64,000 nucleotides of DNA from Zygnema circumcarinatum SAG 698-1b. Lineage: Eukaryota > Plantae > Zygnematophyceae. Position 1 is the first letter of the stretch, and each line of letters begins with the position of its first letter. This document shows positions 18,136-52,745 of the stretch, in pieces. Both the position numbers and the translations under genes were made by a program. The notes beneath the pieces were generated by a model. It did no database searches, was not told the DNA's origin, and was given only the letters and a program-made list of their open reading frames with translations. The stretch covers positions 2,790,001-2,854,000 of the forward strand of contig CM074812.1 in the NCBI GenBank assembly GCA_037447605.1. The letters run 5' to 3'.

Positions 18136-21100
18136 ATGGCGCCTCGACGGAGCCTCCCTCTCCCCCCCCTCCTCCCCCTCCTCTCCCTCCTCCTCTCCCT
18201 CTCCCTCCTCTCCCTCCCCTCTCCCGCCGCCTCCCTCCCCCGCTCGGAGCTTCTCCCGTCCGGCCCCTCCTTCGGCGACAAGGCGCTCCCTCCCCTGGAC
18301 GAGGGCTCGAGCGGCGCTTTGTACCTGCCGGCGCCGATGTCGTTCTTTGGGTACAACGCCACGAGACTCTTCGTCAACAACGACGGATACATATCCTTCA
18401 TGTCAGCCTCCCCTCCCCCTCCCCCTCCCCCTTCTCCTCTCCCCATCCCCCTNNNNNNNNNNCCTGCCTCCTTCCTTCCTCCTCTCTCCTCATCTTGATT
18501 GCATTCCTACCTTTCTCCCTCCCACCTCTGACGCTCTCTCCCCCCTTTCCTCTCTTTCTCTCACAGTCTCCCGCTTGCTTTCCCCCTCTCTTGGTCGCTC
18601 TCCTCTCTTGTCTCACTCTCCGTCACTCATTTGCACTCCCTCTCTACCTTCACATTCTCTTGCTCGCTCTCTGCCCTCATTTTCCTTTCCCCACTCTCTC
18701 TCGCTTGTTGTCGCTTCCTGCTCTCTTGTTTCCCCTCCTCTCTGCCCGCTGTCTCACTTCCCCTTTTGCTTTCCCTCTCGTGTTTACCCGTCCCCCATTT
18801 CTCGCCCTTCCACTCTACCCCGCTTCCTTTCTTTTCCTCCCACTCGCTCGCTCGCTTCCCCGCCCTCCCTCCCTTGCTTTCCCCCCTCTCTTGCTCGCTC
18901 TCTCTGCCCCCTTCGCCGTCTCCCTTTATCTCTCTCCTTCCTTCTTGGCTCTCACCCCCGCTCTCTCGATCCCACTCTCTCGTCCCTCTTGTAGTCCCAT
19001 TGTCTCTCTCCCTCCTCTCGTTTCCTCTCATTTGTCTCTCCCCCTCGCTCTCCCCACTTGTATCTCTGCCTTGCCCTTTCTTCCCCATGTTCTCTTCCTC
19101 CCCATTGTCTTTGCTGCTTGCACTTTCTTCCCTTCTCCCTCCCTCACCCCCCCTGACTTTCTTTGCCTTTTCCTTTCTGTATCTCTCCTCGTCATCATCT
19201 TTCAAGTGTGCTTCTCTTCATCGCTCCCTAACTTATTCTCCTCTCTTTGTCATTCTTTTGTGACTCTCTTTCCAAGCGTTCCATCTTCATCCTCAAAATT
19301 TCCCCATTTAGCTCTTCACGTTTTCTATCGTTCTCATGTCCTCCCTCCTTCTTCCTCTCCCTCTCTTTCTCTCTCTGAAGTTTCCAGCACATCTCTCTAT
19401 CTCTTCCTCCTGCCAATAGACATCCTGACCCCATTCTTAACCTTAGTGCGTTACTTTGAAAGAAACTGAAATTGAAAGTGGTCGGAATTATTTTTTTGTA
19501 TGCAGGGAGTTCAATTCATGGAGGCCGGTGCTGTTTCCTGTATGGGCTCCAATGATCGCCGGATTGTGGTCTGACATAGGTAAAGAAAGGGACGATGTTG
19601 ACCCCCTTCAGTAGCAGCAACATTTGTCAAGTAGATCTGTGCAAGAATTGATCATATTGCTGCACTTCTTGTAATACATGAGTCGCTAGGATGAGTTTTT
19701 TTTTCCCTTCCCTCTTTCTCTCCCTATCTCTCTCTCTTCTCCTCGCTCTTCCCCACAGACTTCCACTCCCTCTGCCTCTCTCTCCCGCTTCCCCTCCAAC
19801 TTCCTCTCCCACTTCCTTTCCCACTTCCTCTCCCTCTTCCTCTCCCTCTCTCTCCCTCGTCCCCTCCTTCCCCTCGCTCGTCCTCCATCTACCTCTCCCA
19901 CTCTCCCCCTTCCCTCCCAGCTTCCTCTCCCTCTCCCTCTCCCTCTCCCTCATATTTAGATCAAGATATATCCTCTTCTCTGCCTCTCTTCTCTCTTGCC
20001 CAAGGTCCCGCATTGTTCCTCCACACCTCGTCCTCTCTTGCTGTTCCAAACACCATTTCATTACCACCCCTTTTCCTTACCCTAATTCTTCACACCTGCT
20101 CTCTCTCCCTCTCCCTCCCTCTGTGCAGACACAAGAGTTGGGGGCTCCGTGTATTACCGGACGGTGAGCGCGTACAGCAGACCGGAGGACCTCGCGCTCA
20201 TGCAGGGTCACGTCACGACCCTCTTTCCAACTCCGGAGGCGCAAAAGTTTCTACCTGACTCGGGGATAGTGGCGACCTTCATTGATGTTGCTCAATTCAA
20301 GTGAGCATCAAACCAGGTTTAGTTTAGTGGATGATTGAGAGAGAGAGAGTGAGAAGGAGAGGGAGAGGGAGAAGGAAGAGGAAGGAGAGGGAGAGGGAGA
20401 GGAAGAGGGAGAGGAGAGAGGGAGAGGGAGAGGGAGAGGGAGAGGGAGAGGGGAGAGGGAAGAGGAGAGAGAGAGGGAGAGGGAGAGGGAGAGGGAGAGG
20501 GAGAGGGAGAGGAGAGGGAGAGGGAGAGGGAGAGGGAGAGGGAGAGGGAGAGGGAGGAGGAGAGAGGGAGGAGAGGGAGAAGGAGAGGGAGAGGGAGAGG
20601 GAGAGGGAGAGGGAGAGGGAGAGGGAGAGAGGGAGGGAGAGGAGAGAGAGGGAGGAGAGAGAGAGAGAGGGACAGAGGGAGAGGGAGAGGGAGAGGGAGA
20701 GGGAGAGGGAGAGGGAGGGAGGGAAGAGGGAGAGGAGAAGGAGAGGGACAGGGAGAGGAGGAGGAGAGGGAGGAGGGAGAGGGAGAGAGGAGAGAGGAAG
20801 AGGGAGAGGGAGAGGGAGAGGGAAAGGAGAGGGGAGGGAGAGGGAGAGGGAGAGAGGGAGAGGGAGAGGGAGAGGGAAGAGAGAGGGAGAGGGAGAGGGA
20901 GAGGGAGAGAGAGGGAGAGGGAGAGGGAGGGAGAGGGAGGGAGAGGGAGAGGGAGAGGGAGAGGGAGAGGAGAGAGGGAGAGGGAGAGGGAGAGGGAGAG
21001 GGAGAGAGAGGAGAGGAGGGAGGGAGAGAGGGAGAGGGAGAGGGAGGGAGAGGGAGTGGGAGAGACGGAGGAGGAGGGGGAGTGGAGAGGGAGAGGGTAG

Positions 21101-52547: not shown

Positions 52548-52745
52548 GTGTGCGTAGAAGCAAAGAGCGCGAACTGCGACAGCACATTGATCCTTGTCTC
52601 GCAAAATGACACTTGCATGAGTTTGAAGAAATGCTTCACCAGCATCAAAGCATTCAAAGCCGTGAACAGATATGCCTGCTCTGCGAAAGCCTTGAAGGCT
52701 GCGGCAAAGATCTGTGTTCTTGCGACGAGTCAATATGGAAACTGA
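52548..52745 (+). other. 65-codon Cys-rich ORF in frame with the Pro rod, separated from it only by TGA CAG
   Basis: ...[83 protein letters not shown]; six Cys are shared with the paralog 1 copy. Confidence 0.5.

Follow-up and report, generated by a model that had tools for sequence, protein, structure and literature searches.

What do the short open pieces that recur in constant order along one strand of an algal contig encode, and do they make up working genes? This question is raised by positions 18136-52745 of the window analysed here, a 64,000-nucleotide stretch of Zygnema circumcarinatum SAG 698-1b (GenBank assembly GCA_037447605.1, contig CM074812.1, positions 2,790,001 to 2,854,000 of the forward strand). 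This part of the window is eukaryotic DNA with abundant CT/GA microsatellites, and the high-complexity pieces lie on its plus strand. A first-pass annotation had read them as a tandem pair of genes for secreted proteins that fuse three nidogen-like (NIDO) domains to an extensin-like proline rod. We consider it probable that the region holds two tandem-duplicated, transcribed nuclear genes, whose product would be a secreted glycoprotein of three NIDO domains and a Ser-Pro(3-4) rod, serving as a matrix-building or adhesive component of the cell wall. The gene structure, splicing, transcription, NIDO homology and rod composition of this pair were observed directly.

Exon structure and transcription of the gene pair

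Exon borders were called by base-by-base reading, and the pieces were then spliced by script. The first gene (gene 1; 18136-31078, plus strand) comprises 15 exons (E1-E15), each with AG before and GT after it, which join in frame into 2,350 nt, or 783 codons, without a stop. Its product begins with a signal-peptide-like start and continues through three repeats of ~225 aa into a Ser-Pro(3-4) rod exon, just as the first-pass annotation had described. The start and repeat unit 1 are encoded by E1-E5 (18136-22048, plus strand; exons 18136-18401, 19506-19579, 20129-20300, 21550-21674 and 21905-22048), a Pro-rich linker and unit 2 by E6-E10 (22171-25523, plus strand; 22171-22402, 22743-22822, 23202-23376, 23624-23751 and 25380-25523), and a poly-Pro linker and unit 3 by E11-E15 (25757-29503, plus strand; 25757-26021, 27538-27617, 28173-28347, 28766-28890 and 29339-29503). 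The linkers that join the units are short versions of the rod sequence. Intron phases run 2, 1, 2, 1 within each five-exon cassette and are 1 at the cassette edges, and this pattern of phases and lengths occurs three times, as expected from in-frame triplication of a five-exon module. A phase-1 acceptor at 29857 then opens the C-rich, Pro-rich rod exon. At the N-terminus, a basic n-region (MAPRR) is followed by ~20 Leu/Ser-rich residues forming a Leu-rich core and then by SPA-AS, as judged by eye.

The second gene (gene 2; 36561-52544, plus strand) begins with the same 88 codons, and the two genes are collinear from ~120 bp upstream of the ATG to past the stop. Its E1-E12 are as clean as the exons of gene 1. 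The signal-peptide-like start and unit 1 occupy E1-E5 (36561-41168, plus strand; exons 36561-36826, 38387-38460, 38995-39166, 40642-40766 and 41025-41168), and unit 2 occupies E6-E10 (41629-44625, plus strand; 41629-41860, 42639-42718, 43120-43294, 43811-43935 and 44482-44625). Intron 3 of each gene (20339-21507 and 39341-40599) is nearly all (GGGAGA)n microsatellite, ~1.2 kb long, which yields long spurious open reading frames on both strands.

RNA contigs from sequencing runs labelled with the same organism were placed on 40600-46000, and eleven predicted exon junctions were matched, which bears out the splicing that the first-pass annotation had put forward for checking. A single contig of gene 2 (depth 15.8, 0 mismatches) spans E5-E6-E7-E8-E9-E10, with the predicted GT..AG borders exact. 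For gene 1, a contig of depth 185 spans E3-E4-E5 and agrees with gene 1 at five diagnostic sites; further contigs with gene-1 letters cover E10-E11 and E11-E12, and the E5-E6 junction is the loose end of a contig with gene-1 letters. Given that spliced contigs carry gene-specific letters, both genes are transcribed. The GA microsatellite of the introns also makes many unrelated sequencing runs match the stretch, at scores of 0.22-0.26.

No assembly gap interrupts an exon. Gene 1 has gaps at 18453, 22511, 22964, 23873 and 28146 in its predicted introns 1, 6, 7, 9 and 12, and an intact acceptor follows the last of these after 17 nt. In gene 2, introns 7 and 12 contain the gaps at 42749 and 46457; the gap at 32823 is intergenic. 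The gap at 42749 is bridged by RNA, as a contig joins E7 to E8 of gene 2 with 0 mismatches. Continuity of gene 1 over its gap-bearing introns is indicated by reading frame, intron phase and collinearity with gene 2, not by RNA. A second copy of E8/E9 with its flanks (23883-24784, plus strand) matches 22974-23872 (blastn, 899/902 bp, 99.0% identity) and gives duplicate tblastn matches, the duplicate exons lying around 24111-24660. The first copy (899 bp) is bounded by the gaps at 22964 and 23873, and the duplicated block is probably a redundant contig end or other scaffolding redundancy; E8/E9 were therefore counted once. If the block were real, it would supply an additional in-frame E8'-E9'.

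NIDO homology and predicted fold of the repeats

We scanned the exons one by one against Pfam and tested the spliced units by script against a full-length profile. NIDO (PF06119, 186 positions) was the top family match and the sole one besides one weak chance match. Its positions are colinear with the cassette, the third exon covering 41-92, the fourth 97-131 and the fifth 142-184. The fifth cassette exon by itself exceeds the curated cut-off of 25 bits (E5, 29.9 bits; E10, 31.0 bits), and E3/E4 and E8/E9 contribute a further 15-20 bits each at colinear positions. We then used a hidden Markov model (HMM) of 130 NIDO units taken from matched proteins, all the named ones animal and one (P0104) proving to be bacterial. 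Over positions 2-212 of 213, this model matched the three units of gene 1 with 138.7 bits (residues 38-260), 165.2 bits (288-512) and 164.2 bits (552-776), and units 1 and 2 of gene 2 with 143.3 and 173.7 bits. The NIDO assignment of the first-pass annotation thus holds end to end for gene 1.

Of the eight columns that do not vary among 40 NIDO units, all algal units retain seven, and in the eighth Trp gives way to Phe/Tyr. Of 12 columns that are nearly invariant, ten show either the family residue or a conservative substitution throughout the algal units (D to E, A to S, L to V/F), and at an eleventh (position 112) the family Leu is present in two of four algal units, the reference sequence itself deviating there. 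Homology also continues for ~40 residues beyond the N-terminal edge of the Pfam model, within the first cassette exon; this 'LLPxG...NNNGxISF' part is the one that the first-pass annotation had compared with NIDO. An exhaustive profile search with the fifth exon returned 549 proteins, the spliced 783-aa head region aligns with matched proteins across 480-800 residues, and blastp of this head against a frog protein with six NIDO domains by Pfam gave an E-value of 2e-68. Two other queries were uninformative: the exon-1 part of a 588-codon open frame found no homologue (candidates of 323-1029 aa), and a protein atlas search with a 47-aa exon returned noise alone, with scores of 0.47 or lower. Taken together, profile, column and alignment evidence supports the repeats of both genes as homologues of the NIDO domain.

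The algal units have one feature of their own. Each contains exactly two Cys residues, 58 residues apart (gene 1 residues 198/256, 451/509 and 714/772) at positions that are hydrophobic in other NIDO domains, and this pair may form a lineage-specific disulfide.

For the fold, we modelled residues 25-262 of the nearest relative, P0049, which is 33% identical to the algal domain, using a 40-row alignment. The model (predicted local distance difference test, 92.3; predicted template-modelling score, 0.91) is mainly beta with two helices, and it superposes on AlphaFold models of the nidogen, SNED1 and mucin NIDO domains with template-modelling scores of 0.8-0.86. Searches of solved structures with the NIDO sequence (PDB) gave no match, Foldseek with the P0049 model found no solved structure at an E-value of 0.001 or better, and VIA-align against solved structures reached a best Z of 4.9, under the tool's stated noise level. 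The top rows of this weak VIA-align result were mostly beta-sandwich domains of glycoside hydrolases, phosphorylases and lyases, together with the periplasmic domain of YidC. We did not count them as evidence of sugar binding, and they serve as a hint only.

Rod, second gene and origin of the pair

The rod exon of gene 1 (29857-31078, plus strand; ~406 codons by frame scan and composition) ends at TGA 31076-31078. Pro makes up 66-73% and Ser 13-16% of its Pro-rich frames, which include 27 Ser-Pro(3+) motifs and some Lys; Tyr and Cys are absent from the Pro-rich segments, and hence so are the Tyr cross-link motifs (YXY, VYK). The Pro-rich frame switches once, by a one-base shift near 30637. In gene 2, an acceptor homologous to that of gene 1 opens a rod exon of ~1,290 codons (48671-52544, plus strand) that ends at TGA 52542-52544 and has 72 Ser-Pro(3+) motifs in the entering frame and ~11 changes of the Pro-rich frame. 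The C-richness of the DNA leaves most of each rod stop-free in all three frames, so that openness cannot separate assembly indels from real off-frame segments or hidden introns. The rod resembles hydroxyproline-rich glycoproteins (HRGPs) in composition and appears nearer to algal HRGP shafts than to a cross-linking extensin. The 'extensin-like' label of the first-pass annotation is therefore apt for the Ser-Pro(n) motifs and fails for Tyr cross-linking: the rod keeps the motifs without Tyr and is not an extensin proper.

Reasoning from this architecture and from the known biology of Ser-Pro(n) glycoproteins, we infer secretion, hydroxylation, glycosylation, a location in the wall, display of the heads and a binding role. 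The protein would pass into the endoplasmic reticulum, where its Ser-Pro(n) stretches, once prolyl-hydroxylated and O-glycosylated, would form a stiff polyproline-II rod within or across the wall or mucilage. Such a rod would be ~400 residues long in gene 1 and ~1,300 in gene 2. The three N-terminal NIDO heads would be displayed on it for binding or self-association, yielding a matrix-building or adhesive wall component akin to the volvocine head-plus-rod HRGPs or to chimeric extensins with another head. The phase-1-bounded five-exon cassette explains how the NIDO unit was triplicated in frame.

Several points weigh against this account. The signal peptide was called by eye and is best described as signal-peptide-like. 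Evidence for the fold comes from P0049, at 33% identity, not from the algal domain itself. RNA support for the junctions reaches E12, and E12 to E16 with the 3' end are read from sequence. The Pro-rich frame of the rod is discontinuous, and its C-terminal half could be partly Leu/His- or Thr/Ser-rich, contain hidden introns or carry indel errors. No function has been clearly assigned to NIDO in any organism (bioRxiv 10.1101/2020.07.27.223107), so that 'binding head' is an analogy. Finally, gene 2 lacks part of its third NIDO unit in this assembly, as E13 and E15 were not found there by tblastn with the gene 1 protein as query. The collinear pair of 15-16-exon genes described earlier is thus borne out for gene 1, and gene 2 falls short of it with 14 visible exons.

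This last point is the starting place of the best-surviving alternative, in which only gene 1 is functional and gene 2 is a decaying or rearranged duplicate, its rod scrambled by frame-shifting indels. We regard this as unlikely, though by no means far-fetched. Unit 3 of gene 2 (44969-46968, plus strand) retains E11 (44969-45233), E12 (45835-45914) and E14 (46844-46968), and its HMM match is limited to the first 80 profile positions because E13 and E15 are missing. In place of E15 stands an expanded tandem repeat (47012-48514, plus strand; 128 bp x 11.8 copies, 98% identity), whose unit was copied from the very beginning of intron 14 together with the E14 donor. The rod shows ~11 frame switches, compared with one in gene 1, and RNA depth is ~10-fold lower (15.8 for the gene-2-specific contig vs 158-329 for gene-1-type contigs). 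However, gene 2 is transcribed and spliced exactly from E5 to E10 without a mismatch, its units 1 and 2 are intact (143 and 174 bits), and the expected site of E13 coincides precisely with the assembly gap at 46457-46466. If E15 alone had been lost, the frame would be unaffected, this exon being 165 nt long and running from phase 1 to phase 1, and assemblies are prone to errors in repetitive C-rich DNA.

The history of the pair can also be read from the identity of its exons. DNA identity between the genes is 96.5-99.4% in E1-E5, 73-81% in E6-E9, 92-97% in E10-E11 and 81% in E12, a mosaic suggestive of an old duplication, after which unit 1 and the beginning of unit 3 underwent gene conversion. 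As a separate observation, the 128-bp array offers ~12 candidate donor sites in tandem.

A wider view of the domain is more speculative, and we hold it to be rather doubtful. In it, NIDO would be an ancient matrix module of bacteria, animals and the plant lineage and a general, exon-shuffled head of the algal surface proteome, forming a plant toolkit parallel to that of animals; the two genes would then be a scaffold recognised by NIDO receptors and proteases, through NIDO-NIDO or NIDO-glycan contacts. The phase-1 cassette may also let NIDO be shuffled onto other genes.

The favoured reading of three heads on a proline rod also depends on where the protein ends. Alternatively, part of the rod DNA would be intronic, and a splice to TGACAG/GTG (the slash marking the splice point) would add a six-Cys tail, leaving a different C-terminus and no rod anchor. 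In both genes the Pro-rich frame ends at an in-frame TGA, and immediately beyond it lies a frame of 65-66 codons whose six Cys and stop are shared by the two genes (31079-31281 in gene 1; 52545-52745, 66 codons, in gene 2; both plus strand). A pyrimidine tract and CAG/G at this TGA resemble an acceptor ahead of the Cys frame, and the net frame offset from rod entry to rod end is equal in both genes. Nevertheless, gene 1 has two extra nucleotides, compared with gene 2, that disrupt its Cys frame; at 86.6%, DNA identity of this frame between the genes is not above that of neighbouring non-coding parts, and no donor site is present at the frame switch of gene 1. A Pfam scan of the tail gave one sub-threshold match alone (DUF753, E 0.033, 15.3 bits vs a cut-off of 24.7), and a protein homology search returned no homologue. 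We therefore consider this splice improbable; the six-Cys frame may be a terminal exon, a readthrough extension or 3' untranslated region.

The surroundings of the pair contribute further features. Between the two NIDO genes lies an intronless gene of the mTERF family on the minus strand (32901-34214; 437 codons; Pfam PF02536, E 8e-40), and ~70 nt past its stop is an assembly gap with A/T runs on its flanks. Upstream of gene 1, a 340-codon open frame on the minus strand (12471-13490) has weak matches to F-box-like and F-box-associated leucine-rich repeat (LRR) families (E ~0.01) and may be an exon of an F-box gene.

We further examined the relatives of the algal domain. All named matches were animal, namely frog multi-NIDO, alpha-tectorin-like, SNED1, SUSD2/mesh-like and DEX-1-like proteins. 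The frog arrays comprise 15 (P0001) and six (P0002) tandem units, and the animal NIDO-AMOP-VWD arrangement was found on two long metagenome contigs. No Pro-rich protein was among the best 150 matches, and no NIDO-plus-rod protein turned up; the algal protein itself was not in the protein libraries searched, where the best-conserved exon had no match above 61% identity. The first-pass annotation had called NIDO best known from animals, which fits the named matches. The domain is nonetheless not animal-specific: one match comes from a gammaproteobacterial contig, where its neighbour is a PEP-CTERM protein, and a search of bacterial genomes with a single bacterial NIDO protein yielded 446 loci in Proteobacteria, Cyanobacteria, Planctomycetota, Myxococcota and Nitrospira. 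Alteromonas, Methyloversatilis, Massilia, Nitrosospira, Microcystis and Nostoc are among the genera with such loci (L005-L084, for example L006, L007 and L012), and the typical bacterial protein is ~415 aa long and combines a single NIDO unit with a signal peptide and a PEP-CTERM anchor or sorting signal. Identity of the algal units to animal, bacterial and other NIDO domains is 27-36%, and 30-33% to the bacterial ones.

A tree of 94 NIDO units, of the kind the first-pass annotation had proposed, divided into three parts: bacteria (100/100), an animal-like clade (96/75), and the algal units with two eukaryotic proteins (98/90). The five algal units form one clade (100/100) and, being closest to each other, point to triplication within this lineage. 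Nearest to them are P0049 (L004, run SRR31564086), P0121 and P0198, which are small secreted eukaryotic proteins; in two of the eukaryotic neighbours, NIDO is accompanied by a Cys-rich domain of the TNFR type. The tree places the algal units inside neither the animal-like nor the bacterial part and gives no support to recent acquisition from animals or from the bacteria sampled; with these data, an ancient transfer looks the same as vertical descent. Separately, an intronless 1,242-aa protein on a metagenome contig (P0099; L003 74-3802) joins two NIDO units to a GH81 endo-beta-1,3-glucanase, that is, NIDO attached to a wall-polysaccharide enzyme.

The notion that the NIDO genes are foreign, through contamination or recent horizontal transfer from an animal or bacterium, could draw on the animal names of the best matches and on the frequency of NIDO in bacteria, but it is largely refuted and very improbable, given 15 spliceosomal introns full of CT/GA microsatellites like those elsewhere in the window, the algal-type Pro rod, the adjoining opposite-strand mTERF gene of a family common in plants, just 27-36% identity to any animal or bacterial NIDO, an algal clade outside the bacterial and animal-like ones, and spliced RNA from runs labelled with the same organism.

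Comparison with known matrix and wall proteins

Full-text searches turned up no publication linking NIDO to algae or plants, which agrees with the novelty expected by the first-pass annotation; domain databases may already list NIDO in streptophyte genomes. What would be new is a chimeric HRGP with a head domain undescribed for the plant lineage, a new architecture and lineage for a known domain. Published work treats NIDO as belonging to animal matrix proteins, and an intact, expressed and triplicated NIDO on a plant-type proline rod would place it in the extracellular repertoire of the lineage ancestral to land plants. The alga may thus offer a simple non-animal system for asking what NIDO binds, and the protein a new type of head among the chimeric glycoproteins by which algal walls and mucilage are organised. 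Moreover, its phase-1-bounded five-exon cassette would be a clear plant-lineage case of the exon-shuffling logic behind animal matrix proteins.

Among known systems, the animal NIDO matrix proteins (nidogen-1/2, alpha-tectorin, SNED1, mucin-4, SUSD2/mesh and DEX-1) share the same extracellular domain at its full length of ~225 aa, and uncharacterised frog proteins carry 3-15 tandem units in arrays like those of the alga. In animals, however, the partners of NIDO are EGF, AMOP, VWD, Sushi, ZP and C-type lectin domains and never a Ser-Pro(n) rod, the partner found in the alga. The algal units further differ from the animal ones in their low identity, their own Cys pair 58 residues apart and their position outside the animal-like clade. 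The bacterial NIDO/PEP-CTERM proteins have the same domain and are likewise associated with the surface or with an exopolysaccharide matrix, but they consist of a single unit without introns or Pro rod, at 30-33% identity and in a separate clade.

On the side of the rod, the chimeric extensins of land plants (LRX, PERK and class I formins) combine a non-HRGP recognition domain with a wall-embedded Ser-Pro(3-5) segment, and land-plant extensin domains usually contain Tyr motifs for peroxidase cross-linking. Their heads are LRR or kinase domains, and Tyr is absent from the rod of gene 1. The volvocine HRGPs, including Chlamydomonas GP1, the sexual agglutinins, the Volvox pherophorins and ISG, are secreted proteins with one or more globular domains and a long Ser-Pro-rich rod lacking Tyr cross-link motifs, and they are presumed to act in wall or matrix assembly or in adhesion. 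Likened by architecture, the algal product differs from them in having a NIDO head in place of a pherophorin or agglutinin head and in belonging to a streptophyte, not a volvocine chlorophyte. The exon model nevertheless predicts the same head-plus-shaft plan, with globular heads and a Pro-rich shaft on one putatively secreted polypeptide.

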